In this document: in pieces, positions 3,440-62,398 of the stretch
Layout: each line of letters begins with the position of its first letter
Numbering within the stretch: position 1 is the stretch's first letter
Source of the DNA: Phaeosaccion multiseriatum
Lineage: Eukaryota > Protista > Ochrophyta, other classes
Assembly (NCBI GenBank): GCA_965112735.1
Contig: OZ218952.1
Span: 2,914,001 to 2,978,000, forward strand
DNA length: 64,000 nt
Reading direction: 5' to 3'
The notes under the pieces: generated by a model
Told to the model about the DNA's origin: nothing
Databases searched by the model: none
What the model saw: only the letters and a program-made list of their open reading frames with translations
Program-made: the position numbers and the translations under genes

Positions 3440-6400
3440 GGGGAGGAGTAGAGCAGAGCAGGTGGGGGGGGAGGAAAGAGGAAAGGAAAGTTAGAAACAG
3501 TTTCAGAGACAGAGCTCGACCCTTGACCTGCTACCGGCCGACCAGCCGGCCAGCCAACCACCAGCTGCCACCGCCGGCGTGAGCTAGCGGCTACCTACTA
3601 CCGCCGGCGTGAGCTAGCGGCTACCTACTACCGCTGAGCCGGCGTGCTACCTGCCACCCGGTCCGGAGGGCCCGGTAGCATGCTACCGAGGATCGCTCGG
3701 TTAGCACGTCAGGGGTCGATTTCAGTTAGATCTCCCTGTGCCCTGCCCTGCCCTTCGACAAATGAGCAGAGGAGAAACTCACTCTCACTCACTCACTCAC
3801 TCACTCACTCTCTCACTCTCTCACTCACTCACTCACTCACTCACTCACTCACTCACTCCCTCACTCCCTTACTCACTCCCTCACTCCCTCACTCACTCCC
3901 TCACCGAGACTTTCAAGTTGAAGTCCACCAAACTGGAGCCTCTCTTGGCCATCTTGGGGAAGTGATGCAGCTGGCTCTCGTCCAACACGGCATCTTTGAC
4001 AATCACATCCTCCCAACTGAAAGTGTCCGATCCGACGCTTTGAAGAATGGGTTGGTTTACTCGAATCAATCTCTCCTTGGCTGAATCGACAGGAGCAGCC
4101 GCCTGGGGGGTGGCTCCACCTGCTTGTTCGACTTCCCCAGGCCCCGACCCTCCTCCTCCTCCGGGCGGTGCCGCTCCATCTACTGCTGGTAGGGTATCTC
4201 CTTCTCCTCCTCCTCCTCCTCCTCCTCCTCCACCACCTCCTCCACCTCCTCCTCCTCCTCCCCCTCCTCCTCCTCCTTCGTCCGCTTCAGTCTTCTTCTC
4301 CCCCCCTCCTTCTCCCTCCTCCTGCGGCGGCTGCTGCGTCTCGCCTGCCGGTACATCAGTGTCAAGCGGGCTCGGTGAGGCACCATCCGCATCCCCCTCC
4401 GTACCCTCCTCCTTCTTGCTCTGCTCTGGCTCCTCCTCCTGGATACCCCCAACCTTGAGCGCTTTGGCCTGATCCAGCAGGTTTAGATTGGAGGGCAGCT
4501 GCAAGCGAGATTCAAAGAATTCGGCGATCATCAGAGAGCGTGCCTGGAACAAACAAACAAACAAACAAACAAACAAACAAACAAACAAACAAACAAACAA
4601 ACAAACAAACAAACAAACAAACAAACAAACAAACAAACAAACAAACAAACAAACAAACAAACAAACAAACAAGCAAGCAAACAAACAAACAAACAAACAA
4701 ACAACAGCCAGTACACAGTCAGACGCGGAACATGTTGCAAGAGTCAAGTCCCGCGCGCATCACGGATTGACCCCACAGAGACTCAATGTGCCTCGCAGTA
4801 GTGGAACGAACGACCGAGCCCCTCAGCCATCCGATAGAGGGAGAAAGAGAGAGGGAGAGAAGGGGGGGGGAGAGCAAGCGATCGCGGGGTCTACTTCTCA
4901 CGGTGGTCACTACGTACACACATACGTACTTCGGTAAGTAAGTTAGTAAAGTACATACTCGTCTCTTCCTCCTCTCCCCTCCACTCCTCCCCTACCCTCC
5001 ACTCCTCCTCTCCTTCTCCTTCTCCTCCTCCTCCTCCTCCTCCTCCTCCTCCTCCTCCTCCTCCTCCTCCTCCTCCTCCTCCTCCTCACCTCAGCAAAGA
5101 TTTCCTTCTTAGCCTCCGCGTCAAGTATGGCCGCTTCGTCCTCCATCCGCTCCTTCTCTAGATCCGCCACCATCAGCATAAGGTGCTCCTTACGCCTGAA
5201 GATGGGTAACCCACTTGCTGTTACCACGATGGGCTTGAATTTGAGGTCCAGTTCGACGTGATAGGTCTGCAGCACGAGGTACGTTTGATCCTCGCTCTCA
5301 CAAATGGCGTAGTCCAGGTGGGCAGACGTTCTCCACAAGAATTTCGACCCTGTGAGTGTGGAGAGGAAAGGGGGGGGAGGAGGAGGGGAAGAAGCGATGA
5401 GGGATGAGGATCAACCGACCAACCGATCGACCGCCCGACGAACGATCAGAGTCCGTGCCATTGTGGCCGTGTGTGAGTGTGTCAGTGTGATATGGTCGAT
5501 GCAATGAGAACGGGAGCAGGGTACATGCATCAGATCGCTGGCTGGAACTGCGTACCTTTGGCAAGCACTGTCCCTGTCAGCTGGATCGTATTCGTTGTTG
5601 TGTCCTGCGCGCGCCCACAAGCAAAACACATACGCACGCACACAGACACGCACACGCACATGCACACACACACACACACAAGGAGGAGGAGCACGGTGGA
5701 AGCAAACAAAGCAACAAGAGGGCGAAGAGGTGTGCAGCAAGAAGAGAGTGGAGGTCAGAGCACACGTCACACACCGACCCAAACGACTCTAACCCATCCA
5801 AGAATGGGGCGGGGGGGGGGACTGTCCGCCTTCCTCCTACAGCTACTGCTCAACCTTCCACCCAAATCACGTCCTGGTACCCCACCCCACCCGACCCTGC
5901 CCCTCGCTCACCTCCTCTGGTGGAGGGGTCGGCTTCACAGGATGGAGCACTTCGCTCTCAATCTCCTTGGCGGCTCTGAGGATGCCTTCGGCGTCTTCGG
6001 GACTGAGTACCCCACGACGCATCCGCTCCGCCTTCCACGCCAGGGATGGTATAGCCAGGCAGAAGGCCGCGAATTCCCATAGCTCTATAGTCATGGAGGA
6101 GTCCGCGTCTACAAGGAAGGTGGGAGGAAGGGGGGAGGGCAGACGTCATTAGGAGAGTGAGCCAGGACAGGCAACGAACGGTGTTGCAGCGCAGCTGGGC
6201 GAGCGAGCGAAGGATTGAGCTAAACGTTCAGTAGGTCCAAACTCATGGCTGACTGACAGAGGCAAATGCCGCACGCGAAAGAGGACGTTGTCCTCCGTCC
6301 TCATCCCTCTTGACTTGTGCTTACCAATGTGGTGAAACACGCTGGCGCTGTCTTCCGGACTGAGCAGTTCCCCCTCCTTCATAATGGTATTAAGGCCCTC

Positions 6401-10318: not shown

Positions 10319-13300
10319 TCATGCAACGGGCGGGGACCCGGGGGGGGACTTCATGTCATGAACCCTTTCTCTCTCTCGAGGACTGACGCTTCCGTCTGCC
10401 CCATTGACGCTGTTCGAAGCCGACATGCTCGTGTCGAGTGGTGATAGCCACGATTGGAACGATTCGTTCTTGTTCGATTTCTCATCGCTCTTCTGCCATC
10501 CCCGTGAGTTGAGACAGTTATCATCACCATCATCACCATCACCACCACCAGCTGCAGCAGCAGCAGCAGCAGCAGTAGCAGCGGAAAGGACCTCCGAGCT
10601 CGACGGCTGACGTTGGACCAGTGGCTCTCTTTCCATAACTTCACTCTCCTCCACAACGGTCACCGCCCCTCCGCTCTCTGGTGCGATGAGGGCCTCTTCC
10701 GCCGTGGTGGTGCCATAGGAGGACGAAGAGGCCGAGGTTTTGGCGAGGATGGCGGGTAGCCAACGCTTCGTCGGCCGCGCGGTTGCCGACGTAATGTTCA
10801 TTTCATCAAGCAAGGCTGAGGAGCCTCGACGGGAAGAGCCTTTCCATCCCCGACCCCGCTGATGCTGAGACGAAGGAGACAACGCCACAGACTGCCCTCC
10901 CGCCGTCTCCTCGCCCACCTCTTCCTCTGCCTGCTCCCGTCCAAGGCTTGCCACGGCGGCCTCCGCCGCAGCTCTGAAGCCCCCGCTGCCTCTGCTGCTG
11001 ACGTCACCCATGCTCGACGAAGCCGGGCTGACTGCCGCTGTAAGAGTGCCGTCGCCCCCAATGCTGCTGCCCCGTCTGCTTGCTCCGGATAGAAACCATT
11101 GCTGCTGTGATGTTGCGGAGAAGCTCACATGCGCTTTCTTGCCGTGAGGAGACCCTCCTGGGCCGATGGCATGCTAGTGAGAGGGATGGGATCAGAGGGA
11201 GAAGGAGAAGGAGAGAAAGAGGGGGAGAAGATGGGGAGGGAGAGAGAGGGGGGGGGGAGGGAGAGTGGTCAGAAGAAGACTGTTGAGCCAAGAAGCCGCT
11301 TGACGAGAGGATTCGTGCAGACCCACCCACACACTCCCGCACACAATACACGCACGCGCATACACGCACATACAAAAACACACACGCGTTGGTAATACAC
11401 ACATACCTCTAGCATAACGGAAGTAAGCATGTGGTAGAGTGCTCTGGAGGTGTTCTTGCCGTCCTTGGCGCTCACTTCCATGTAGGGGATGCCAAGCTGC
11501 TCGGCGAAGCTCTTGCCCTGGGCATCTGAGACCTGCCTCTCCTCGGGGCTACGGCGAAGGAAGAAGGGACAAGATGCACAGGGGAGGGGAGGGGAGAGAG
11601 AAGAGAGCAAACGGGTGCGTAGAGAAGCGAGGGAGAGAGAGAGAAGCGACTGGTGTGCATGAGGCCACCTTTTCTTGATATTTCCCATGAATCATCTCAA
11701 CGTACGAGCGATCGATCCTCTCCTCTGGACCCCACGCACCTACAGTCGCACTTATTGCCGAGCAGGATCATCTTGACGGAAGGGCGGAGGTGCCCGACAA
11801 TGTCCGGCCGAGCGAGCATCTCCTGAAGTTGGTCTAGGGATTCGGAGCTCGTAACGTCAAACACCAGGAACAGGCCATCGACCATGCGAAGGTACGGGGC
11901 AGAGACGCTCCAAAAGCGCGAGCCTCCAGCAAAGTCACACTGGATAGATGAGTGGGAGAGGGAGAGGGAGGGAGGAAGGGAGGGAGGGGAGGGGAGGAGA
12001 GAGGGAGGTGAAGGAGGGAGGGGGGGAGTGAGGTGAGGGAAAGCAAGAGGGAGAGAAGGAAGGAGATGAGGGGAGGGAGAGGAAAGGGGAGAGGGAGGGA
12101 GGCGAGGGGAGAAGAGAGGGAGGAAGGAAGGGAGGGAGGGAGGGAGGGAGGGAGGGAGGGAGGGAGGGAGGGGAAAGGGGAGAGGGAGGGAGGGAGGGAG
12201 GGAGGGAGGGAGGGAGGGAGGGAGGGAGGGAGGGAGGGAGGGAGGGAGGGAGGGAGGGAGGGAGGGAGGGAGGGAGGGAGGGAGGGAGGGAGGGAGGGAG
12301 GGAGGGAGGGAGGGAGGGAGGGAGGGAGGGAGGGAGGGAGGGAGGGAGGGAGGGAGGGAGGGAGGGAGGGAGGGAGGGAGGGGAAGGAAGGAAGGGAGGG
12401 AGGGAGGGAGGGAGGAAGGAAGGAAGGAAGGAAGGAAGGAAGGAAGGAAGGAAGGAAGGAAGGAAGGAAGGAAGGAAGGAAGGAAGGAAGGAAGGAAGGA
12501 AGGAAGGAAGGAAGGAAGGAAGGAAGGAAGGAAGGAAGGAAGGAAGGAAGGAAGGAAGGAAGGAAGGAAGGAAGGAAGGAAGGAAGGAAGGAAGGAAGGA
12601 AGGAAGGAAGGAAGGAAGGAAGGAAGGAAGGAAGGAAGGAAGGAAGGAAGGAAGGAAGGAAGGAAGGAAGGAAGGAAGGAAGGAAGGAAGGAAGGAAGGA
12701 AGGAAGGAAGGAAGGAAGGAAGGAAGGAAGGAAGGAAGGAAGGAAGGAAGGAAGGAAGGAAGGAAGGAAGGAAGGAAGGTGGAAGAAGGATGGGTCTTAC
12801 AAAGTGTTTGCATGTCATCGTTTGGCTGGACTTACGATTTGCAGTTTCAGATGAGTTTCGGCAATAGTCATCTTCTTGACGTTCTGCGGGACACAGGTCG
12901 GTCGATAGGTAACAACAAGTAGAGCATCAATTGGCGGGGGGGCGCACACGGGGAGGCAGGACGAAGCGAGAGGAAGTATGCGTGGGTAAAGGGACAAGGA
13001 GGCGTAGCTGAGGCTGGCAAAACGCTGAACACGTTATACTCGACTGGCAGCAGCGTGGACTCACATAGTCAATACCGGATGTTGAGCCTGGGTCAGGCGT
13101 CCATCGATCCTCGACGAGCCTGTTTCTGAGGCAGGTTTTTCCACAGGAGCCACCAAAGACTCCAATCTTGAAGAATACCTCACTGTAGACGGTATACGAG
13201 GGGAAGAGGAGAAGATTGGGCAATTGATCATCGAGGATAATGGGGTAGTGAGAGGACACGCCAAGGAGCGGGGGGGGGGGAAGTGGAAGAGGAGAGAGTG

Positions 13301-25637: not shown

Positions 25638-28600
25638 CTACAAGGACGAGAGCCTGGGCACTGAGGTACAGAGAATGCATTGATTGACACAGAGAAGAGG
25701 GGGAGGGGCGAACGGACGGAAAGGAAGGTAGACAACAAGGGGGTTGGGGCGTGGGCGTGGGTGGGGGATGGGAGAAGGGAGGGGGGTGGGCATGGTTCTC
25801 GCGCACGTTTCAGAATGTCAAAAAGACATCACATTCGTTTCTTTGGGATTGGGACTTCCACTGGCACACCACAAGAAAGCTGCAGAAAGCTCTGCAAAAG
25901 CCCCACAAAAAGAAAGGTTTGCAATCAGGCCTACACACTCGTATTAGACCTTACTACACTCCACCCCTCTCTCATCAGAGCCTCACACCTATCAGACCTC
26001 CTTCTTCAACCAATCAATCAATCAATCAATCAATCTATCTATCTATCTATCACAACGTACCTGCAGCAACCTCCCCGACGGCGGCCATGCTGAGCTTCGA
26101 CTTGGTGACCTTCGCTGCCACGCTGGCCACATCGGCCGCCTGCACCCCGTCCACAGAGGACGCCAGGTTGAGCGCTCCGGAGTAGAGAGCCGCCACACAC
26201 TCGGAGGGCGACGACACGCCCTGGGGGGTGGGGTGGGGTGGGGTTGGGCAAAGGAGGGGGAGGGGTGAGTGAGTGACGAAGGGGTGTGAGAACGGCGAAC
26301 GAAGCGAAAATGATTCTACACTTCCACCTACACCCACACAAAAACACACACACACACAAATACACACACACCTGCAGCAGCTCGAGCTTGTATGCCGCCT
26401 TTGCCCCCTCCACCTCAGCGGCAGTGGGCTTGGACGACGATAGACCCTTGAGGCAAGAGGACATGGCCGCCAGCAGGCCGCCCATGCCTGCGTCATGGTC
26501 TTCGTCGCTCACTGGGGCCTGGCCAGTCACGCCCAGGAGGCCCGTATCGGAGAGAGACAAGCCGAAACTGTTCATGGAACACCTCGGTGAGATGGATCCG
26601 GCGGCGGCGATGGACACGCGCTGGGAGAGGACGTGCTGTGGGAGGAGGGAGGGAGAGAGGAGGAGGGGAGGGTGGGGGGGGGGGAGTAAGTGGCAAACTC
26701 TTGATATAAAATAAAAATAAGCATACATTGCCCATGCACGGTGGACTGTTTTGTCATGTTTTTAGTCTTTCCTCGGCCCCAACTAGTCCCGCCCGTGCCC
26801 CTCCGCCGCCCTCACTCCCCTTCCTCCTCCTCCGCCTCCTCCTCCTCCCCCTCCTCCTCCTTCTCGTCCTGCTTCTCGTCTTCCTCCTTCTCTTCCTCCT
26901 CCTCTTCCTCACTCCTCACTCCTCACTCCTCCACTCACCTTGAGCACTCCAAAGGCCGCTGCGTCCGGCTCGCACCCGCCCACCCCCTCAAAGGCCAGAG
27001 ACACCTGCGTGTAAGGAGAGATGGCCGCCTGTACGCGCACCTCGCCTCCGGTGTAGGGGCTCTCCACAAGCACAGGCGCAGGGCCGCTCTCCACCTTGCC
27101 AAAGCTCTCCTCGGCAAGGGTAAGGAGGTCGGCATGAGCAATGCCGCTGCCCACCAGCGTCATGTTGTTGGAGGTACGGGTAGCGTCGAGGTAAGGGAAG
27201 ACAGAGGAGGTCTTCGCGGGGAGGAAGATAGAGTGCCCGAGAGCGGAGTTCTCTCCGTAGGCGGCCGAGTAGAGTGCCTCGTTCACAGACACCTGTGGAG
27301 GGAGGAGGAGGAGGGGAGGGGAGGGGGGAGGAGAAGGAGGAGGGGGGAGGGAGGAAGAGGAGGAGGAGGAGGAGGAGGAGGGGGGGGGAGGGAGGAAGAG
27401 GGGGAGGAGGAGGAGGAGGAGGAGGGGGAGGAGGATGAGGAGGAGGATGAGGAGGAGGAGGAGGAGGAGGAGGAGGAGGAGGAGGAGGAGGAGGAGGAGG
27501 AGGGGGTTTTCCAGCTTCCGTTTTTGAAGGAACAAAAAACGCCTCTGCCGCGGCAGCTATAGCGCATTTGATGTAGTCTCACAGATTGCAAACACCCTCT
27601 GTCGTCACCTCTCCCCCCTTCCCTTCCCTTCCCTTCTGACCACCTCCCTGTCCGTCCGCCCCGCCTCTTCTTCTTCCCCCGCTCCTTCCATCGCCTCCAC
27701 CCCATCCCATCGCATGGCATCCCTCTGGTGTGTGTGCCTCGTGCGTGTGTGTATGCCTCACTCACCTTGGCCGACCGATGCGCCTCTGTCAAGTCAATCT
27801 CGGACACCTTCTTTGAGATTTCCTCCAGCTCGAAGCCCCCTGCGCAGTAGAGCGTGGTCTCTGCCAGCGTCCCTACCGCCATTTCCGCCAACTCCGGTCC
27901 GGCCCTGCCGTGCACCTGCATCAGAGTCATCTCCCGTCCGCCGCTCGCCGCTCCGGTGGCTCCAGCGTCCTCCAGGGACCTGATGTTGGGAAGAAATGGG
28001 AGGCAAGAAGGAAGGAAGGAAGGAAGGAAGAAATGAAGGAAAGAGGCAGCCACGCCACCGCAAAAGCCCATAGCAGCGTGAGTGATGGAGGTTTCACGGA
28101 ACGCATTTCACTGACCCCACACTACTTAACAACCCCACAGACAAAGGAACATAGGCCCCACAAAAGCAATGCTTGCTTTGCTTCTCTCATTCGCCTCACA
28201 CTTCCCACCCAAACGACAAAAGAAACAGAGACCTTGCAATGCCTTGCTTGTGCTGCTCTTGCTCCTACTTGCCCCACCCGCCCACCTACCTTGTGATTTG
28301 CAGAGTGGAACGGTTTGTTGTGGTTCGGAAAGCGAGGTTCTGCGCAAAGAGAGCACAACCACGCTGGAACGGGTCCTCTGCCCGGGAGCCTGAGCTCAGC
28401 ACGACACCATAGGATGCAATAGCGCTGCCACTGTCGTAGGACAAGACCTTGACCCCATTTGCCAGAGAAGACACTTGAGAGGCGGGTGCGCTTGGTTGGG
28501 AGGGAGGGTGTTTTGGGGTTCTGCAAAACACACACAAAGGACAGCAAAAAGGCAGGCCAGGCAAAGAAGGAGGAAAGGGACGGAAGAAACAAGGGTGAGG

Positions 28601-31612: not shown

Positions 31613-32189
31613 CTACTGTAGCGCTGGTTGGTAGCTTAGCTAGGCTTCGGAGCCGCAAGGGTTGGCAAAGGTTCATGGAGCGTATTATGACTGTGTTTTC
31701 CAAGCTGCAGCAAGGTCCTTCTCACTTTCTCATGCTGTAGCAAAGTCAAATTGACTAGATAAACCACCACGCCGTAAATCAATGCTTTGGCATGAACGGC
31801 GTGGTTGGACAAGAGCCCAAAGTGAATTGTTAGAAAGGGTTGGGATAGGGTTGTGAAAATTGAGGGACAAACACGTAAATATACACAAATGGAGGGACAA
31901 ATACGGCGTACACAGAGAGGAGTGAATCTTCTTCATCTTCCACAGCGTGCTCTGCTGGCCGTCGGCGGTAGCAGGTAGCAGGTAGCAGGCCCATCATACC
32001 GTATCCCCCCTTAGGAGTAGAGGGCTTTTTGCTCATGTCCTGTTTTCTTCCTGTTGATGTCGTCCGGTGCTTCCGTGCGGACTGTGGTCACGAAGCTTTC
32101 TGGGCACGTCGCCCCTCATCCGACAGGGGAGGGGGGAAAGGAAGCTCCGAGGGGAAGCTCAGACAAGCACTTCTTTTCTACTTATGGCG

Positions 32190-32317
32190 TGCCACCTGCT
32201 ACCCTGCTACCCTGCTACCTTGCCTTCGCCAGCTTTCTGCCAGAGATGTTCAGTGCCGGCTCAGGGCCTTTTACATGCTACCGAAGAATAGCAGCTCGGT
32301 AAATTGTCAGGGGTCGA
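32190..32317. mobile_element. Degenerate single end of the TCGACCCCTGAC-TIR element, copy D (GGTAG subfamily)
   Basis: AGGGCC...CATGCTACCGA..GA...GCTCGGT...GTCAGGGGTCGA is colinear with the end of copy A. CTGCTACC repeats at 32196-32220 and inverted GGTAGCAG repeats at 31967-31989. Confidence 0.6.
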
Positions 32318-33847: not shown

Positions 33848-36800
33848 ATGACGACGGAAAAGGAGGGGGAGGGGGAGAAGCAGGGAATGGAAAAGGGCGA
33901 AGGAGGCAGGGATAAGACTGGAGAGGCAGAGGTGGAGAGCAGTGGGGAAGGGGCGATTGCGGCAGCTGAGAGCCAAAGGAGGTGGAGCAGTGCTGGAACA
34001 ACTGCTCCCGACTCCGGTCACCGTGCCTCCGGAGGTATCCTCAGCCCTCAGCGCATCAGGGAGAGGGGAAGGAGGAACAGGAGCGATAGCGATACCATAC
34101 TGCGCGAAGCTGTAGCAGGAGGGGGTTCGTCGGTCACCCTCTCTCCCCGCGCACGGCTCCATTCCTTGGGCTTGCTGCCCTTGCCCATAGGTATCGGTGG
34201 GGACAACGAGGGCGGTGAAGGAGCGGCTCCACAGCAGGAAGCGGTCAGATCCATTTCTCCGCCGTCAGACTCATTGTTTGGGGCCCCGAACCCATCGACC
34301 CCGCCTCCGCAGCACAACGGATCCGGAACCATAGCAAGAGGAACCTCACACTCTCGTTCACCGAGCACTTTTGCCAACGGCGGCAGGCACGGAGCGCAGG
34401 TCCCAACGCTGGGAACTACCAAAGGGGTTAGAGAAGGGGATTTAGCAGTATCAGCGGCAGCAGCGGTAGCGGCAGGACACGTAAGCGATGGCAGCGATGC
34501 TCAGGGACTCACCATTGATGGGCAGCTGTACCATCCGGTCGTGCAAGTGGGTCACGAAGCAGGGCAGAGAGACGTGGAAAGGGACAATTCTGAGCTAGAG
34601 GGGAAGCCTGTGCCACTCGGACCTACTGTGCCGCTTTGCTACTCGTGCGGCAAGATGATGTTACCAAGTGCCGAGGCCTGTTTGGACTCCAGTGGGACAG
34701 GGCCAATGTCCAGTATTGCCCCTCCCTCTCTAGAGTCTCTAAGGGGTGCAAACTGTGGAGTAGGCTTCCACAATCAGGCGGGAGGGAGTGGCATGGGGAG
34801 CGGGGGCAGCTGGATGAATCCTCCTACGTCAGGGCAGAGTCTGGTCAGTCCGAGTCCCCTCAACGCTCATCACAACGTGCACGGGGGCGGGGGTGGCAAA
34901 TGGAACGCGAGGGCGGGCAGAGTGAGGAAGGGGCGATGGAAGAGGGGCAAGGTGATTGGAGAGGGGGCCGTGGGGAAAGTGTACCTTGGCATGAATGAAG
35001 AAACGGGTGCACTGATGGCCGTCAAGGAGATCAACTTGCATCGTAGAGAGAAGGAGTTGAGGGAGCTGTACACGGAGATTCAGGTCATGCATCAGCTTCG
35101 GCACAAGCACATTGTGGCCTACCTCGGGGCCGAGCTCATTGAAGAGAGGAACATTCTCTGTCTGTTTCAGGAGTGGGCCCCCGCCGGGTCGTTGTACCAA
35201 CTGCTGGAGCACTTTGGAGCCATGAGCGAGAGCATGGTGGCCAAGTACACATCAGAGGTCCTTGACGGTTTGGCCTACTTGCACGAGAATCACGTCATCC
35301 ACAGAGACATCAAGTGCAAGAACATACTCGTGGACGATGCGGGCGTAGCCAAGCTTGCGGACTTTGGCTGTGCTCTGCTCATGGAGGAAGGAGAGATGGA
35401 AGACATGGTAATGACCATGACGGGCACTCCCAGCTTCATGGCGCCGGAGATTCTGCTTCGACGCAAGTCGGGTCGAAGGATGGATATCTGGTCCCTGGGC
35501 TGTGTGGTGATGGAAATGGCAACCTGTATGGCGCCTTGGGAGGACACCTTTCGCACCCCATGGGAGCTTGTGAACCACTTCAAGACGAGCGAGGAGCCTC
35601 CTGAGATTCCGGCGACCATTGGAAAAGAGTTGTCAGCTTTTCTGCGGCGTTGCTTCACGTTTGACCCATTGCAGCGGCCTCGGGCAGTGGAGCTTCTAGA
35701 GGACCCATTCCTGCTCTGTAGTGTGGACACCTTTTCTACTTCACGGGTCTTCCCTTCCTGCAGTAGCAACGGTCTGTCGAGTATGATCAGCCGCCAACAC
35801 ATGAGTACCGACTCGCTGGTGCCACCGGGTGGTGCAGGGCAATGTCCGCTGGAGGAGGATTACGCACTTGGCCTTGGCAGCACCAGCGTCACTCCTTCTG
35901 CAAGTATGGGAGGCGGCATACGCACCTCGCAGAGCAGCGGCACCCTGGGGGGACTCCTCGGCCCTCCGCATTTATCTTTGCGGGTGAGGACGGCTCCCAT
36001 CATGGCTACGTCTCCTGGCTTTGGGCAGGGGCAGGGGCAGCAGCAGGAGGAGAAGGGAGAGGACAGCGAGGTGCCGCTCGAGGAGATGGGAAAGGCAGAG
36101 GCCATCAGCCGCCTGAGGCGAGCCTGCAGCTCCGATTTGTTGAAGAATATGGACCGGACCAACTGTAATGGTACGCCAGGAAGCAGTCGGAGGTTTAGGA
36201 GGCGGCGCCGGAGTGCCTCGGGCCGTATACGGTCTCCTTCAGAGGCGAGCGGAGGAGGGGGCGGGGGGGGCTTTGGCAACTCCAGCGACGATGATAATTC
36301 GCTCTATCTAAAGGGCGGCCGCCTGAACCAGAGGCGAACACACGGGTATGGCGAGGACAGCGGCTTGCACAGGAGGGCGGGAAGCATCGGAGGGGGAGGG
36401 GGGCAGACCTACTCCATTGTGGGAGGTGGTTTTGGTGGTGGTGGAGGAGGAGGAGGAGGAGGAGGAGGAGGAGGAGGAGGAGGAGGAGGAGGACCGGAAG
36501 GAGGGGCAACGGGTGGTGGGATCCCCAACTTCCCCATCACCCCTCCTGCCCATCGTCGAGTTGTGCGCTACCATCATGAAAAGGGCGTCAGTCGCAGCGG
36601 CGGTGACCGGCGTCGGATGCGGAGGAGAAGCACTGCTACTTGCGGGGTGGCGAGAGGAGAGGACCCGCTGGTGGTGGACGGGCTCGCGGCGCAGGTCCTC
36701 CTCGATAAAGATGCCCTCGAGGGGGCTGAGCTACACCACAACTCGCACCACCTCTCTTCTGCCGACTTGCATTCCTTGGGGAGCAACAACTTGGTGGGCA

Positions 36801-38203
36801 ATTTGAGCTTGGTGTCCCCCTTGCCTGGCATCAAGGCCTCGCCCTCCACGTGTAGCCCCCAGCCTCGTCAGATGCCGGCGGGACTCCAGATGCCTTCTCC
36901 GACGAGTCCGCCGATGGACCAGCAGATGGCCATTGGCAGTCATGGTCACGGGAATGGTGGTTGTAGCGGGGGTAAGGGGGGCAAGGCGTTTGCAGCGGAT
37001 AAGATGGACACGCCCAACGAGCTGCGCAACTATGCCAGCGGGCAGGGGCCGAGAGGAGGAGGAGGAGGAGGAGGAGGAGGACTGGGAGGAGAGGAGCACT
37101 TTCTTCACGGTGGTGGTGGGGGAGGAGGTGGAGGAGGAGGAGGAGGAGGAGGAGGAGGAGGAGGAGGAGGCAGCAGGGGGGGTGGCGTGCACCTGCTGGA
37201 CAGATTGAAGGAAAAGAGACTGGCCTTCGGTGGTGGTGGTGGTGGTGGTGGTGCCGGCACGATGAACGGAGGAGGACGCGGCAGCAGCAACAGCAACAGC
37301 ACCTGCACCACAGCCACGAGCAAGTGGTCCATGAGTAACCCTTTTGGGTGGGATGGAGGGCCTGCGAGTCCGGATGAAGCGCACGGGTTGGCAGCAGTGC
37401 TAAGGGAGAGGAGGAAGAGGAGCAATAGCGCAGCCAGCTCTGTGGAGGTGGAGGGTTTTGAAGCTTTCCCTCCTCCTCCTCACGGTGGGGGTGGTGGGGG
37501 TGGGAGTGGATCCGATGCCTACGCGGCGAGTCTCTTTGCAGGAGCAGGGCTTACTCTCCAGCTACAGAAGGAGCGCCGCATCCCACGATCGCAATCCCAG
37601 GGTTTGGGTGGTAGCAGCAACAGCATGAGCAGCAACAGCACCAGCAGCAGGGGGGGAGGAGGAGGGGGCCTGCGCTTGGGGTTGGGGTCGAATCAAGGGG
37701 GAGGGGGAGGGGGAGGCATGAAGCCAGAAGCTGGATCATACCGCAGATCGCTGAGTCAGAGCGACTCTCGTGAGCTGCTTGGTGCGTGGCCTGCCAGCTG
37801 TGGGGACATGCCAGCGATGATGGCGTACGATCATCAAGCGGGTGGGGGGCTGGATCCAAGCGCTGCTGCTGCGGCGGCGGCGGCGGCGGCTGCGGCGTCC
37901 TCTGCACAGGCGACGAACGCCTACCCGACTGAGGGGGGGGGGGGGATCGGGCGTGATGCTGCTCCTTCATTGGGAAGGACGGCAACGGTCACTGGAAAAC
38001 TTGGAGAGCTGTTTAGGGGCGGGGGGGGCGGGGGGGGGGGGGTAGCAGCAGCAGCAGGAGGGGGAGGAAAAGAAGGAGCAGCAGCAGCAACACCACCCCC
38101 TCCTCCCGCCGAGAAGACTAACCTGAATCTACAGGCTGTGTCTTCGGCTGCAAGCGAACTCGTTTCGGACCTCAAGAAGAGATTCTCCTCCTTCGGGAAT
38201 TGA
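33848..38203 (+). CDS. MAP kinase kinase kinase (STE11/MEKK/NPK1-like), single exon, 1451 aa
   Basis: RWKRGKVIGEGAVGKVYLG, LMAVKEI, HRDIKCKNIL, KLADFG, GTPSFMAPE, DIWSLGC; long Gly/Ser-rich flanks. Confidence 0.93.
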   Translation: MTTEKEGEGEKQGMEKGEGGRDKTGEAEVESSGEGAIAAAESQRRWSSAGTTAPDSGHRASGGILSPQRIRERGRRNRSDSDTILREAVAGGGSSVTLSPRARLHSLGLLPLPIGIGGDNEGGEGAAPQQEAVRSISPPSDSLFGAPNPSTPPPQHNGSGTIARGTSHSRSPSTFANGGRHGAQVPTLGTTKGVREGDLAVSAAAAVAAGHVSDGSDAQGLTIDGQLYHPVVQVGHEAGQRDVERDNSELEGKPVPLGPTVPLCYSCGKMMLPSAEACLDSSGTGPMSSIAPPSLESLRGANCGVGFHNQAGGSGMGSGGSWMNPPTSGQSLVSPSPLNAHHNVHGGGGGKWNARAGRVRKGRWKRGKVIGEGAVGKVYLGMNEETGALMAVKEINLHRREKELRELYTEIQVMHQLRHKHIVAYLGAELIEERNILCLFQEWAPAGSLYQLLEHFGAMSESMVAKYTSEVLDGLAYLHENHVIHRDIKCKNILVDDAGVAKLADFGCALLMEEGEMEDMVMTMTGTPSFMAPEILLRRKSGRRMDIWSLGCVVMEMATCMAPWEDTFRTPWELVNHFKTSEEPPEIPATIGKELSAFLRRCFTFDPLQRPRAVELLEDPFLLCSVDTFSTSRVFPSCSSNGLSSMISRQHMSTDSLVPPGGAGQCPLEEDYALGLGSTSVTPSASMGGGIRTSQSSGTLGGLLGPPHLSLRVRTAPIMATSPGFGQGQGQQQEEKGEDSEVPLEEMGKAEAISRLRRACSSDLLKNMDRTNCNGTPGSSRRFRRRRRSASGRIRSPSEASGGGGGGGFGNSSDDDNSLYLKGGRLNQRRTHGYGEDSGLHRRAGSIGGGGGQTYSIVGGGFGGGGGGGGGGGGGGGGGGGGPEGGATGGGIPNFPITPPAHRRVVRYHHEKGVSRSGGDRRRMRRRSTATCGVARGEDPLVVDGLAAQVLLDKDALEGAELHHNSHHLSSADLHSLGSNNLVGNLSLVSPLPGIKASPSTCSPQPRQMPAGLQMPSPTSPPMDQQMAIGSHGHGNGGCSGGKGGKAFAADKMDTPNELRNYASGQGPRGGGGGGGGGLGGEEHFLHGGGGGGGGGGGGGGGGGGGGGSRGGGVHLLDRLKEKRLAFGGGGGGGGAGTMNGGGRGSSNSNSTCTTATSKWSMSNPFGWDGGPASPDEAHGLAAVLRERRKRSNSAASSVEVEGFEAFPPPPHGGGGGGGSGSDAYAASLFAGAGLTLQLQKERRIPRSQSQGLGGSSNSMSSNSTSSRGGGGGGLRLGLGSNQGGGGGGGMKPEAGSYRRSLSQSDSRELLGAWPASCGDMPAMMAYDHQAGGGLDPSAAAAAAAAAAAASSAQATNAYPTEGGGGIGRDAAPSLGRTATVTGKLGELFRGGGGGGGGVAAAAGGGGKEGAAAATPPPPPAEKTNLNLQAVSSAASELVSDLKKRFSSFGN

Positions 38204-40544: not shown

Positions 40545-42472
40545 TCACACTACTTTGCGGAAGAGCTGCCAGAGGTCTCCATCCACAAAGTCGTTATCGA
40601 TGATGGCCACCAGGAAGAAGGTGTCGTGAATCTCGTGAAGCACCGCCGAGGACTTGCTCTCCTCGTCATAGAGATTGGCCCACAGCCGCCGCCACAAGTC
40701 GAAGGCCTCCGTCTTCCACACCTGGGAAAGGATCGATGAAAGGGGCCGAGTTGCAGGGTGGGCGAAGGGGGGAGGGGAGAGGCGGGGAGAGGGATGGGCG
40801 GGGGGGGGGGGGGAGGAGGATGAGAGGTGGAGGCGGAGGAGCAGGAGGAGGAGTAGGAGTAGGAGGAGGAGGAGGAGGGGGGGGGGTGAGGAGGAGCAAG
40901 AGGAGGAGGATGAGGAGGTGGAGGAGGTGGAGGGGGAGGAGGAGAAAGAGGAAGAGGAGGAGGAGCAGCAGCAGCACCAGGAGGAGGAGGAGGAGGAGGA
41001 GGAGGAGGAGGAGGAGGAGGAGGAGGAGGAGGAGGAGGACGGGGAGGAGTAGCAGCAGCACCAGGAGGAGGAGGAGGAGGAGGAGGAGGAGGAGGAGGAG
41101 GAGGAGGAGGAGGAGGAGGAGGAGGAGGAGGAGAGACTTGAAGGAAAGGAAAAGTGCGCAACTTCGAGGAGTGGGGGGGGGAAGAGGAGAATGAGGGGCT
41201 GCCACAGCAAACCATACATACTCAGTGTTGTTACCAAAGACTCGCCGTCGAGGCCTAGAAACTGAAACTGAAAGTGAACGTCCACACACTCACTCACTCA
41301 CTCACTCACTCACTCACCGCGAAGGTGTCTGCATCGAATATGGTGGGCTGTTGCACCTCCTTCTCCGGGAACACTCCCCAGGTCAAGGCACACGTGCCTG
41401 AGGCCCCTTTGCTCTTGATGGTGCCCGAGGCATCGATGGCAAAGTAGGCAAGGGAGGAGGACGAGGAAGAAGAAGAGCCGTCCATGTCTGTGTTCATGGA
41501 GTCGATGAGCTCCTGCAGCTTCTGCTCTCTCGTCAGTGGTCGGTTGGTTGGTTGGTTGGTTGGTTGGTTGGTTGGTTGGTTTGTCGGGTGTTGTTTGGTG
41601 GAGTGATCAAGGGCAATCCCAAGGGAGGGACGGAGCGGCGGGACAGCACAGAGCAGAGCAGGAAGATGATGAGAAAGAGGGAGGTCGCAAGTAAGCAGCA
41701 GCAATCAAGAGTAATCAAGAGCTGACCTCCACTACCCTCCCCTTTCTGCCCATACACCTCCCCCTCCCCCCTCTCATCCCCTCCCCTTACCTGTGGCGAA
41801 CAGAAGAACTCGAGATAGGCCTTTTGATACACCCTCCCGCCCGCCCCGCCCCACCCGAAGGAAGGGTCATCGCTGCGAGCCCCGTTGACCTTGGGCTGGC
41901 TGTTGATGGTGAGGTATCCTCTCCGATTGATGTCCGCAAGCTCATCCCTCATCACTGATGATGGGACCGATCGGGGGCCGCGTGTGTTCGTGTTGCGACA
42001 AGCGAAGAAGAAGAAGAAGCGCAAGAGCAAGAACAAGAGACACAGAGAGGGGGGGGGGGGGTACGTGAGACAAGGAGAGGATACTTCTAACGGCAGGAGG
42101 AGAGATGGGTCAAGGATGGTGATGTTATACCACTCTACGTACCCATTGTTTCTGATAGAAGCTGATTTTCGCACCATGGCAGCATAGGAATTCTCCCTTC
42201 CACGTACTTGGCAAAAACCTGCGTGTTGGTGTGTGCGGTTGTTGTGTTGTTGTGTTGTTGTGTTGTTGTGTGTTGTGTTGTCGTGTTGGTGTTGTGTGGT
42301 TGTTGTGTTGTTGTCGTGTTGGTGTGTGTGGTTGTTGTGTTGGGGGTGGACGGAAGGGAAGGGGACGGGCACGCACGAGAGGGTGCGATGCGGTGAGTAA
42401 GCAAATCAACCACATACAAAAACACGCAACCCGACATTGATCGGGAGAGAGATGAGACAGAGAGAGAAGAGA

Positions 42473-57850: not shown

Positions 57851-60486
57851 ATGAAGCTATTACGCTCAGCACCAGGGCTTCTGCTAAGCTGGGTGAGCTT
57901 GGAGCTGATCTCACTCCGGGGCAGCAGCCATGCCTTCTCTCATGTGGCTTTGTTTAGCAAATTACATGAGTCGCCGCAGCCTCGATCATCCCTGAAGCGA
58001 AAGAGAGGCACGGCCGTGAGGTCTTCAGACGCAGACGCGTCTGACAGTGCTGATAGAATAGGTGCTTTCAATGTGTGGTTAGGGGAGCAAGGGGTGCAGC
58101 GAGACGGACTGCAAGTCACGACGTTCAACGATGGTCTGAGGGGGGTCATCGCAACCAAGGACTTTGAGAAGGGAAGTGTTGTCTTGCGCGTGCCGCTCAA
58201 GGCTGTATTATCAGGTGAGCGGATTGGACGAGGGAAAAGGATTGAGTCAGGAAGCGGATGGAAAGAGAGAGAGAACCCGAGAGGACTCTACTGTTGATGG
58301 ACGAAGGTTGATGGAAGGTCTTGCTCCCCCCCCTTATGACTCTTTTACGTAGCCTGACAAGCATCTCCCACCCCCTCGCGCAGATGCTCCCGACCAATTC
58401 GCTGAGGCCATTGCTGTTCCACCGGCCAAGGCGAAGGAGAGCGCAAGAGACGTGCACTGGATTGGGCGCTTGTCCGCCGTCCTAGCTCACCACCGCAGCC
58501 TTGGCAAGGCCTCTCGCTTTCAGCCCTACGTAGACATGCTGCAGGACCCGCCTTCGCTGCCAGCGGAGTGGACGGAGGAGGACGTTGCTGCGCTGCAAAA
58601 TCCAGCTTTGGCAGGCCGAGTGCAACTTGTGCGGGACATGAAGGTATCGATCTGTCAGAGGAGGATGCGTCCGCTGGCGACACCCGTGAGGAAGGGATTG
58701 CACTGCTTGCATCTCTCTCTCTCGTTCTCCCTCGCCCCCCTTCTCCCTCTCTCTCTCAAATTGAGCCTGCCTTCCCTTAATGCGTGCTTTGGAACATTAA
58801 CAACAGAGCGATCTTTTTAGACAAGTGGAGCAGCTGCAGGAGTGGGAAGGAAGCAGGAGCGGCGGCGGGGGCTTCGGAGGTGGTCCCCAGCGGGGGAGCA
58901 TTACATTGGAACACTTTGAACACAGCTTCAAGAACGTCTTATCCCGGACCTATCTAGTAGACCCCATAGAACGGCGCTGCCTTGTGCCCCTGCTCGACAT
59001 GATGAACCACAACACCCTCGGGAACACACCCACGGACGTGCGCCTCACAGATGATGAGGTCTGTCTAACCACCAACTACCCCATCAAGAGGGGAGATCAA
59101 GTTTACCTCAACTATGGAGAAAAGGTACGGGGCAAGGGCCCAGCCAGCGCGCTGAGAGTCGAGTCGGTTTGGGTCTGTTTCTGCTGCTGCCGCTGGCAGG
59201 GTCTTGTGTCTTGCTAGTCTGGCTTGTCCAGCTTGTCTTGCTTGCTTCATCGCCGACCTCTCGCGTCTCTGGCGGGCTGCTCTGACGCCCGTGTCAGCAA
59301 CGACGAGGGGAGGGACACGCCTAAGGAGATCCTCCCGTCTCAAGAGAAGCGAATGTGTTCCCAAACTCCCTCCCTCCCTCCTCATTTCCCTGTCCCGCCT
59401 TGCACTCTTTCTTCTCTTGGCTCAGGACAATGACGACCTGCTTCTATACTACGGTTTTATTCCCGCCAACAATCCATCCGATAACGTGCGGCTCGTAGGG
59501 GGTTTCGGTCCACATGACCTTGAACACATTGAGTCTGATGAACAAATGCCCCCACAGAAGGTGAGAGGGGTGGCGGCGGGGAGGTGCATGTATTGCTTCC
59601 ATGGGCCGCTCTATGCCACATTACTAAAGTTGCCTCTGAGGGAGCAGACACACAAGGGCAGGACACGGTGCAATTGTCAATTGTCTGATTTCAAGAGCGT
59701 TAAAGAGTGGGTGTCTGTCTCTGCGTCAGGGGATACCGTGCATGCTTGTATCCGTGTGTACGTGTGTGTGCGCGTGTGTGTATGGGAGAGATTGGCTTCG
59801 CTTGGCTTGGCTTTTGGCGGCTTGCCCATGTACCTCTTGTGTCTCTGCTTACGGGCGGTGGGGAAGCTTTCTTCCAGTCCCACACCTACAAACCTGGGAA
59901 GGGGAATCGCTCACACATCACCGCCATCGTCTCGCACCCCTTCCCCGGTCGTGCTCGTGCCTGATCCTGTCTGTCTGCCACCCCCCCCCCCCCCGTTCAA
60001 TTCCTCTTTCCTCTCACCCCCCCAAAGATTGGGGCACTGGAGCGGCTCGTGCTCATGTGTCAGAATTCCTTTTTGGTGTTCGGCCACGCCATCCAAGCAG
60101 AGCTCGTCACCGCCCTGCGTATCTTCTACGCCACCCCTGCAGAGTGTCAGGACCGAACGGAGCAGCTGAGCTCTTGGAACGACTTCACAGACCCAGTGTC
60201 AGAGGCCAACGAAGGCCTTGTGCTAAAGTCGTTACAGAAACGGCTGAAAGAGCAAATGGAGGAAGGGTGGAGCACTACCCTGGAGCAGGATCGACAGGCC
60301 CTGGTGGAACTGTCCAAAGGGGCTCAGGTGACACGGGATAGTGGGAGCAGCGAGACGGATGACATTCGGAAGCTCGAAGCGTTACGCTTCTGCATAGCCA
60401 AGAAGGAGATTTTGGACAAGCAGCGCCTCGTCCTCTCCAAGGGAGAGATTACTGTCATGGAGGGCCTGGCTGGTAGCCTGGAATAA
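57851..60486 (+). CDS. Plastid-targeted SET-domain lysine methyltransferase (Rubisco LSMT/SETD3-like)
   Basis: Exons 57851-58214, 58384-58643, 58807-59124, 59426-59560, 60028-60486. SHA-FS targeting; GLRGVIATKD, SRFQPYVDML, LVPLLDMMNH, YLNYG.KDNDDLLLYYGF, STTLEQD, ALRF...KKEIL. Confidence 0.9.
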
Positions 60487-60494
60487 AACCCTGA

Positions 60495-60593
60495 TCGACC
60501 CCTGACGTCTTTTCTCGATAGCATACTATCGGGCCCTGAGGGCCCGATGGCAGATAGCACGCCGGCTCACGCTGGCGATAGCAGATAGCAACG
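60495..60593. mobile_element. Truncated TCGACCCCTGAC-TIR element, copy B (GATAG subfamily)
   Basis: Starts TCGACCCCTGACGT and aligns to the reverse complement of the copy A end, with every GGTAG/CTACC read as GATAG/CTATC. Confidence 0.75.
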
Positions 60594-61564
60594 CCCGCCT
60601 GAAATAGACCAAATGACCAAATTGGTACAAAAGTCGTTGCCAGTTGGGAAACTTGAAGGACCAACCCGTCTACATGAAGTCTTCTTCGGAGACATCCATT
60701 ATGAGTATCATTTCGTTCCTTTTGAGATGGAACAGCAAGGCGCATTTGGTCCGTCACGGACCAAATGCGCCTTGCTGTTCACGGACCAAATGCGCCTTGC
60801 TGTTCCATCCCAAATGAAACGAAATGGTACCTCGTGGGGTCATAATGGATGTCTCCACCCTGGCCTTCCATGCCTTTCGGTGGCACCCCATACTTGGTGC
60901 GCTTGGTTGCTTCAGCCTTCTTGGCTGCCGCGAGTGCCTCCTTCGATGCCTTGGCCCTATTGGTGATGTTGGTAGCATCAGTGAGCGTGATGTCAATCAG
61001 CAAAGACTTGTGGCCATCCCCATATTCGTGGTCGAATGGAAGCTCAAACATCCAGGGGGGAGTCGCAATGTCCATCTCCATTTGTTTGGCCACGTGGGCG
61101 TCACCCCTCACGCCGTTGCTCCCCCCTCTCCCCCGTCTCGCGGTGACTGTTCTTGCCCTCATGAAGAAGGGGAAGCTGGTGTTCTGCACTATCCCTCTGC
61201 CCAGGCCCTCACTCTTCTTCTGCGCGACGACAAGTGCCTTCTGCACAGCGTCATGTTGGGGTGTGCTGAGCCCCGTCTTCGTGCAGGTGATGATATGCCC
61301 CTCCGTCAGCGCCTTGCCGGGGCACTTATGGCAATCCTTGCTGTAGATGGGGTCGATACCGAGTCGTCTCCGAATGGCACCTCTGTGTTCCCCGTCCGTG
61401 AGGTGGAGTGCTCCCCCTGCCTTCTTGGTCGGCCGAAGAAGGAGCCACGCACCAGCCCCCTTCATGCTTTGGCTTAGGGCTCTGGCCAGGCCTTCTCCCG
61501 TTCGTCCTGCGCTGGGATCGCTTTCAGGCGTTCCAGAAAGTTTGTCTTCGCCTTCGACGTGAGG

Positions 61565-61644
61565 TCGACCCCTGACGCGCTATCGGGCCCCCCCGCCCCC
61601 GATAGCGCGCTATCGGCCACGGCGGATAGCGTGTCAGGGGGCGA
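61565..61644. mobile_element. Complete 80-bp TIR element, copy C (GATAG subfamily), with 6-bp TSD GTGAGG
   Basis: TCGACCCCTGAC ... GTCAGGGGGCGA flanked by GTGAGG at 61559-61564 and 61645-61650. Removing the element plus one TSD restores QKRLTKLLT-SKAKTNFLERL in the retrotransposon frame. Confidence 0.88.
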
Positions 61645-62065: not shown

Positions 62066-62398
62066 CGGAGGCCCTTCTCCTCCCCAAGGGAGGAAGCTGG
62101 CTGCGAGGTGCGCTCGGGCCCACATACTGTGACCTCCCTCCATGGGCAATCACAGCATCGATGTACAGCACGGCGCCCATCATCTCCCACATGAACGGCA
62201 GTGATGGAGAGAGTACATCGATGCTGTGATTGCCCATGGAGGGAGGTCACAGGCTCCATCTGTTGCCGTTCATGTGGGAGATGATGGGCGCCGCGCTGTA
62301 CATCGATGCTGTGACTGCCCATGGAGGGAGGTCACAGTATGTGGGCCGGAGCGCACCTTGCAGCCAGCTTCCTCCCTTGGGGAGGAGAAGGGCCTCCG
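62066..62398. repeat. Long inverted repeat (~140-bp arms) with an internal 40-bp duplicate
   Basis: 62066-62209 is the reverse complement of 62254-62398 with a few mismatches; the spacer repeats part of an arm. Confidence 0.92.

Follow-up and report, generated by a model that had tools for sequence, protein, structure and literature searches.

Why should copies of one short repeat, scattered through a single stretch of DNA, fall into two sets that differ by the same base at every one of their internal motifs? The window analysed here (the whole stretch of DNA, 64 kb in length) holds four copies of one short inverted-repeat element at positions unrelated to each other. Copy A (3516-3719, minus strand) is complete at 204 bp, and copy C (61565-61644, plus strand) is complete at 80 bp. 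Copy D (about 31955-32317, minus strand) has the left terminus only, as a search for a recognisable right terminus found none, and copy B (60495 to about 60600, plus strand) is likewise a left end only, with similarity to the family ending near position 60600. The exact 12-mer TCGACCCCTGAC forms the left terminus of all four copies and occurs four times in the window, where by our own estimate about 0.01 occurrences would be expected by chance. The right ends of copies A and C are the same terminus inverted, with one mismatch each (11/12 matches); the two termini of copy A are TCGACCCCTGAC and, as the reverse complement, TCGACCCTTGAC. The original prediction held that the termini are unchanged between copies, and this is true of the left termini, which are identical in 4/4 copies, but not of the right ends of A and C, where each carries its single mismatch.

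Similarity between the copies extends inward to different degrees. Copies A and B share 84% identity over 56 bp (nhmmer E = 3e-10), while copies C and D match copy A with weak nhmmer E-values (0.04 to 0.3) and are assigned to the family, as putative members, mainly on the terminus and the internal motif. Neither copy C (80 bp) nor copy A (204 bp) contains a meaningful open reading frame (ORF). Because the elements have inverted termini, lack coding capacity and lie dispersed near genes, we regard them as MITEs, and the four copies probably represent an undescribed MITE family of familiar transposon architecture. Querying the literature with the terminus sequence brought up unrelated primers only. 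Searches of the window with each copy as query (nhmmer and blastn-short) revealed no further copies. One stretch that weakly resembles the copy B core (11141-11182, minus strand, beginning CTAGCATGCCATCGGCCC; nhmmer E = 0.5) was set aside; it may be a decayed relic but is probably a chance match.

The flanks of the two complete copies leave the target-site duplication ambiguous. Copy C is flanked on both sides by the 6-bp repeat GTGAGG if TCGA is counted as part of the terminus. At copy A, TCGA (4 bp) is duplicated only if the terminus begins at CCCC, and a 6-mer from the flank, CTGAAA, recurs 9 nt beyond the right end. The duplication could therefore be 6 bp, as for C, or TCGA, as for A; an 8-bp target duplication of the hAT type was found at neither A nor C under any boundary tried.

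Inside the conserved terminus TCGACCCCTGAC, the elements carry a subterminal repeat of the form G-(G/A)-T-(A/G)-G-C on both strands, and it is here that the copies divide. Copy A has eight GGTAG/CTACC sites, three GGTGG variants and no GATAG, and copy D has seven GGTAG/CTACC sites, one GGTGG and no GATAG. Copy B, by contrast, has five GATAG/CTATC sites, one GATGG and no GGTAG, and copy C has four GATAG/CTATC sites, no GGTAG and no variant site. This census bears out what had been claimed for copy C (four GATAG sites and no GGTAG) and for copy D (GGTAG type), and the two strings originally quoted for copies A (about 3635-3690, minus strand) and B (60514-60569) are both present as written. No copy mixes the two motifs. 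The count comes from just two copies of each type, four in all, so very few independent lineages stand behind the all-or-none claim.

The motif is concentrated where a transposition signal would be expected to lie. It is over-represented near both ends of the elements and in both orientations, and, each for its own motif, the copies exceed the density in the rest of the window 13- to 45-fold (Poisson P 2e-9 to 2e-6). One site abuts the terminus directly, within the extended inverted repeat, and reads CTACC at the right end of copy A versus CTATC at both ends of copy C. About 30 nt from the terminus, a pair of motifs in copy A forms the perfect palindrome GGTAGCATGCTACC (3674-3687). The corresponding palindrome in copy B, GATAGCATACTATC (60517-60530), is imperfect: preservation of the palindrome, as initially described, holds for 6/7 pairs, while the central pair has been lost through an extra G>A change. 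Copy A also contains an internal tandem duplication of ~30 bp (about 3576-3635, minus strand) with two GGTAG sites per unit, which shows that local duplication enlarges the repeat arrays. The array of copy D comprises one GGTAGCATG site, three tandem GGTAGCAG units and one GGTGGCACGCC, followed about 210 bp further in by three inverted CTGCTACC units. Units have thus been duplicated in the arrays of both D and A, so some motif sites are not independent of one another.

Copies A and B can be aligned site by site, and this alignment provides evidence for a concerted switch. All six homologous motif positions differ between the two copies, compared with 13 of 95 other columns (Fisher p = 2e-5). 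Every one of the six differences is G>A in the orientation of the motif, including one site on the opposite strand, and the probability of six such independent changes at the background rate is about 1e-7 to 1e-8. The unique flanks of 6/6 sites are conserved, with only the single base differing. Furthermore, A and B alike preserve the difference at motif position 4 between the adjacent units GGTGGCAG and GGTAGCAC; the units have therefore not been homogenised against each other, yet both have switched at position 2. The original prediction that all sites of A and B, including the GGTGG/GATGG variant, changed alike is therefore confirmed. These results demonstrate that the motif switch is real and statistically solid.

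We propose that the copies represent two lineages of one MITE family, GG (copies A and D) and GA (copies B and C), that would dock two transposase variants at putative binding sites, a reading to which we give about an even chance. By analogy with characterised DNA transposons, the conserved terminus TCGACCCCTGAC would be the cleavage site, and the short subterminal repeats would be where the mobilising transposase docks with its DNA-binding domain. The family would then have split in two at the second base of every repeat. If a transposase had to occupy several sites at once for mobilisation, only elements in which all sites match the available transposase variant would be amplified, and such a multi-site binding requirement would filter out mixed elements and leave all-or-none copies. 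A reading with two specificities had been put forward at the outset, and it fits the data best, in that every homologous site has switched in motif orientation on both strands with the neighbouring bases untouched; from this pattern we infer that the motif is bound by a transposase and that transposases of two specificities exist.

Among the alternatives, the one that survives best is concerted evolution with no change in protein specificity, in which a variant unit spread by slippage or duplication together with hairpin-templated (quasi-palindrome) correction, the base at position 2 being neutral. Array turnover of the kind this requires is seen in the tandem GGTAGCAG units of copy D and in the two-site duplication of copy A. 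The motif sites can also pair: sites 1-2 form the palindrome, sites 2-3 form a hairpin, and copy C adopts a tight two-hairpin fold in which all four GATAG/CTATC sites are paired (z-score -5.7), so that one arm could serve as the template for copying a change into its partner. As single strands, copies A, B and D fold no better than shuffles. Against this account, the one-base change sits inside conserved unique flanks at all six A-B sites, and neighbouring GGTGG and GGTAG units have kept their position-4 difference, which speaks against conversion of one unit by another. Most sites in copy A, moreover, lie in one orientation without an inverted partner and are thus out of reach of hairpin correction. 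We consider concerted evolution of this kind unlikely, although it is the least unlikely of the alternatives.

The motif could instead be bound by a host factor or serve some other role, with the two types being independently founded MITE families that have a common terminus. The G-to-A change does create AGATAG, a WGATAR-like site for GATA factors, which is seen as CAGATAGC at sites 4 and 6 of copy B, and the copies adjoin genes: copy B is found directly 3' of a SET-domain gene, and copy D lies ~1.5 kb upstream of a kinase ORF. However, the homology of copies A and B extends to each individual site, so they were not independently founded. Motifs gather at the termini, also within the extended inverted repeat, which is the pattern of a transposition signal, and there is no sign of a regulatory role for the motif. 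This makes a host-factor role improbable, about half as credible as concerted evolution.

A mutational process specific to the motif, converting CTACC to CTATC in one set of copies through methylation and deamination or through damage at a protein-bound site, appears slightly less probable still. In its favour, a single kind of transition (G>A or C>T) accounts for all six changes, with an orientation that follows the motif and not the strand, and motif sites that show transitions only are reminiscent of repeat-induced point mutation (RIP) and other deamination-type mutagenesis. A C-to-T process acting on the repeats had been suggested along with the two-specificity reading, but the data lend it no support. 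Across the window outside the copies, CTACC is not depleted, with GGTAG/CTACC at expectation (observed/expected 1.08), and GATAG/CTATC is not in excess (1.12). The affected cytosines occur in CCG, CCT and CCC contexts, which fits no CG or CHG rule, and 8 of the 13 background differences between A and B are transversions; a general signature of deamination is therefore missing. The copies differ from the products of RIP-type mutagenesis in that the changes follow no dinucleotide context rule, transitions are not in excess in the remainder of the element, and the target motif is not depleted elsewhere. In 4/4 copies, moreover, the ACC within the terminus has stayed unchanged. Ectocarpus, the nearest relative with a name, is reported to have no detectable cytosine methylation, which we count against deamination. 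A process aimed only at the MITE repeats would be compatible with the sequence data. Finally, that the pattern reflects chance or ascertainment in a very small sample of four copies, two per type, is scarcely credible given the Fisher test of motif positions against other columns (p = 2e-5) and a probability of ~1e-7 for six identical independent changes even when the choice of position and of change is allowed for.

The reading with two MITE lineages and two transposase variants has partial parallels among known transposons. hAT transposases bind family-specific short subterminal motifs, and the Herves transposase, for example, binds CG/AATTCAT (PMC3143072). The BED domains of Hermes bind AAGT repeats, including a quasi-palindromic pair beside the TIR that is bound cooperatively, an earlier GTGGC proposal having since been re-evaluated (PMC10368747). 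Ends with short subterminal repeats are also found in Ac, Tag1 and Tol2, as cited in the Hermes and Herves papers, and in such hAT ends a 4-8 bp motif is bound by the N-terminal DNA-binding domain of the transposase. The MITE family resembles the ends of Hermes and Herves in combining a short conserved terminus with many subterminal copies of a motif on both strands, and its palindromic pair GGTAGCATGCTACC recalls the quasi-palindromic pair of Hermes. It is unlike hAT elements in that copies A and C have no 8-bp target duplication. The terminus TCGACCCCTGAC (TCGAC..., or CCCCTGAC if TCGA is the duplicated target) is presumably also unlike the hAT consensus. Unusually in comparison with the hAT systems, two lineages with the same terminus differ by one base at every site.

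Two further systems are instructive. The Arabidopsis MITE Emigrant has TIRs and subterminal repeated motifs bound by proteins of the related autonomous element Lemi1 (PMC1636448). The family described here is similar to Emigrant and the pogo-like Lemi1 in being a MITE with subterminal repeated motifs, here putative binding sites, and differs from them in that they belong to another superfamily with a TA target. In maize Mutator, clades of ends are preferentially mobilised by their own transposase, with co-evolution of TIR and MURA (PMC10401008). The Mu binding site, however, is a single ~30-bp stretch in a long TIR, whereas the MITE family has a dispersed 5-6 bp motif with one base switched throughout.

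An autonomous partner was sought in the window, and further copies were sought beyond it. Scanning 19 ORFs of the window, including 16 of the 23 longest, revealed no transposase domain. Viral contigs gave only chance matches to the terminus-plus-motif pattern and no match to a 19-mer core; a 24-mer core was found in neither metagenomes nor prokaryote genomes; and the 12 metagenome matches to the terminus plus two motifs were all due to chance. The terminus TCGACCCCTGAC was also absent from one Ectocarpus contig of 11.5 kb. These viral contigs, metagenomes, prokaryote genomes and the one Ectocarpus contig yielded neither an autonomous partner nor another copy.

The surrounding DNA is eukaryotic and ~57% G+C; microsatellites of the (GGGA)n, (GGAA)n and (GAG)n types are numerous, and genes are broken by introns. 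Pfam matches in the window include a protein kinase, ankyrin repeats, Kelch, a PH domain, MTHFR and a SET / Rubisco-LSMT-like gene. The SET-domain gene, with a Rubisco LSMT substrate-binding-like region, runs from 58825 to 60486 on the plus strand (stop codon 60484-60486). Copy B starts 9 nt past this stop codon and therefore probably lies within the 3' untranslated region. The ORF downstream of copy D encodes 1451 aa with a protein kinase domain (33848-38203, plus strand), and its best named relatives are from three Ectocarpus species (56-58% identity), the next best reaching <=44%. The DNA therefore comes from a stramenopile near the brown algae. A look-up for an identical copy of this ORF in the public gene collection gave no match. 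No known RNA families were found anywhere in the window, and a scan for prokaryote-type promoters and terminators was empty, which is irrelevant to eukaryotic DNA. A very long (GGGA)n / (GGAA)n tract at 11935-12850 produces a strong spike of GC and AT skew in the 12-14 kb bin, and similar purine-rich tracts occur at 170-360, 27250-27550 and 40750-41100.

Between copies B and C lies an ORF of 228 aa (60779-61465, minus strand) with a C-x2-C...H-x3-C motif. It has no Pfam match, and a word search returned nothing. A large representative search revealed one real homologue, P0035 (E = 2.7e-15), which comes from a 930-bp JGI metagenome contig and shows 36% identity by BLASTP over residues 41-228; the other six matches were repetitive multi-stretch alignments to unrelated proteins. 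With no Pfam match and only one real homologue, this ORF was ruled out as the transposase of the family; possibly it is a piece of a different mobile element. The 3' end of the ORF is duplicated in inverted orientation over ~70 bp around 60690-60860, with a near-palindromic junction at 60735-60810. We also considered whether the left end of copy B and the right end of copy C delimit a single 1150-bp element. This was ruled out because copy C is bounded by a left terminus and a flanking repeat of its own and folds perfectly, and the outer flanks have no common duplication. The stretch between B and C belongs to something other than the MITE family. A separate foldback lies 420 bp downstream of copy C (62066-62398), with 135-nt arms that are 97% complementary around a 63-nt spacer; it contains no GGTAG or GATAG motifs, and its terminus is not that of the MITE family.

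As it stands, this is a tidy case of subfamily structure among the transposons of an algal lineage that has been little studied, and it involves no new mechanism: the switch is best explained by subfamily structure in a MITE family whose subterminal repeats are putative binding sites. If two transposase variants read GGTAG and GATAG, respectively, specificity and dispersed targets would have changed together while the cleavage terminus stayed fixed. It is possible, though less likely than not, that the two types form a natural pair of orthogonal transposase/binding-site codes with a common cleavage terminus, one base apart at each putative docking site. If so, the four copies would offer a snapshot of a DNA-transposon lineage in the act of splitting, with non-autonomous riders sorting between two transposases, and might provide a template for orthogonal transposon tools.
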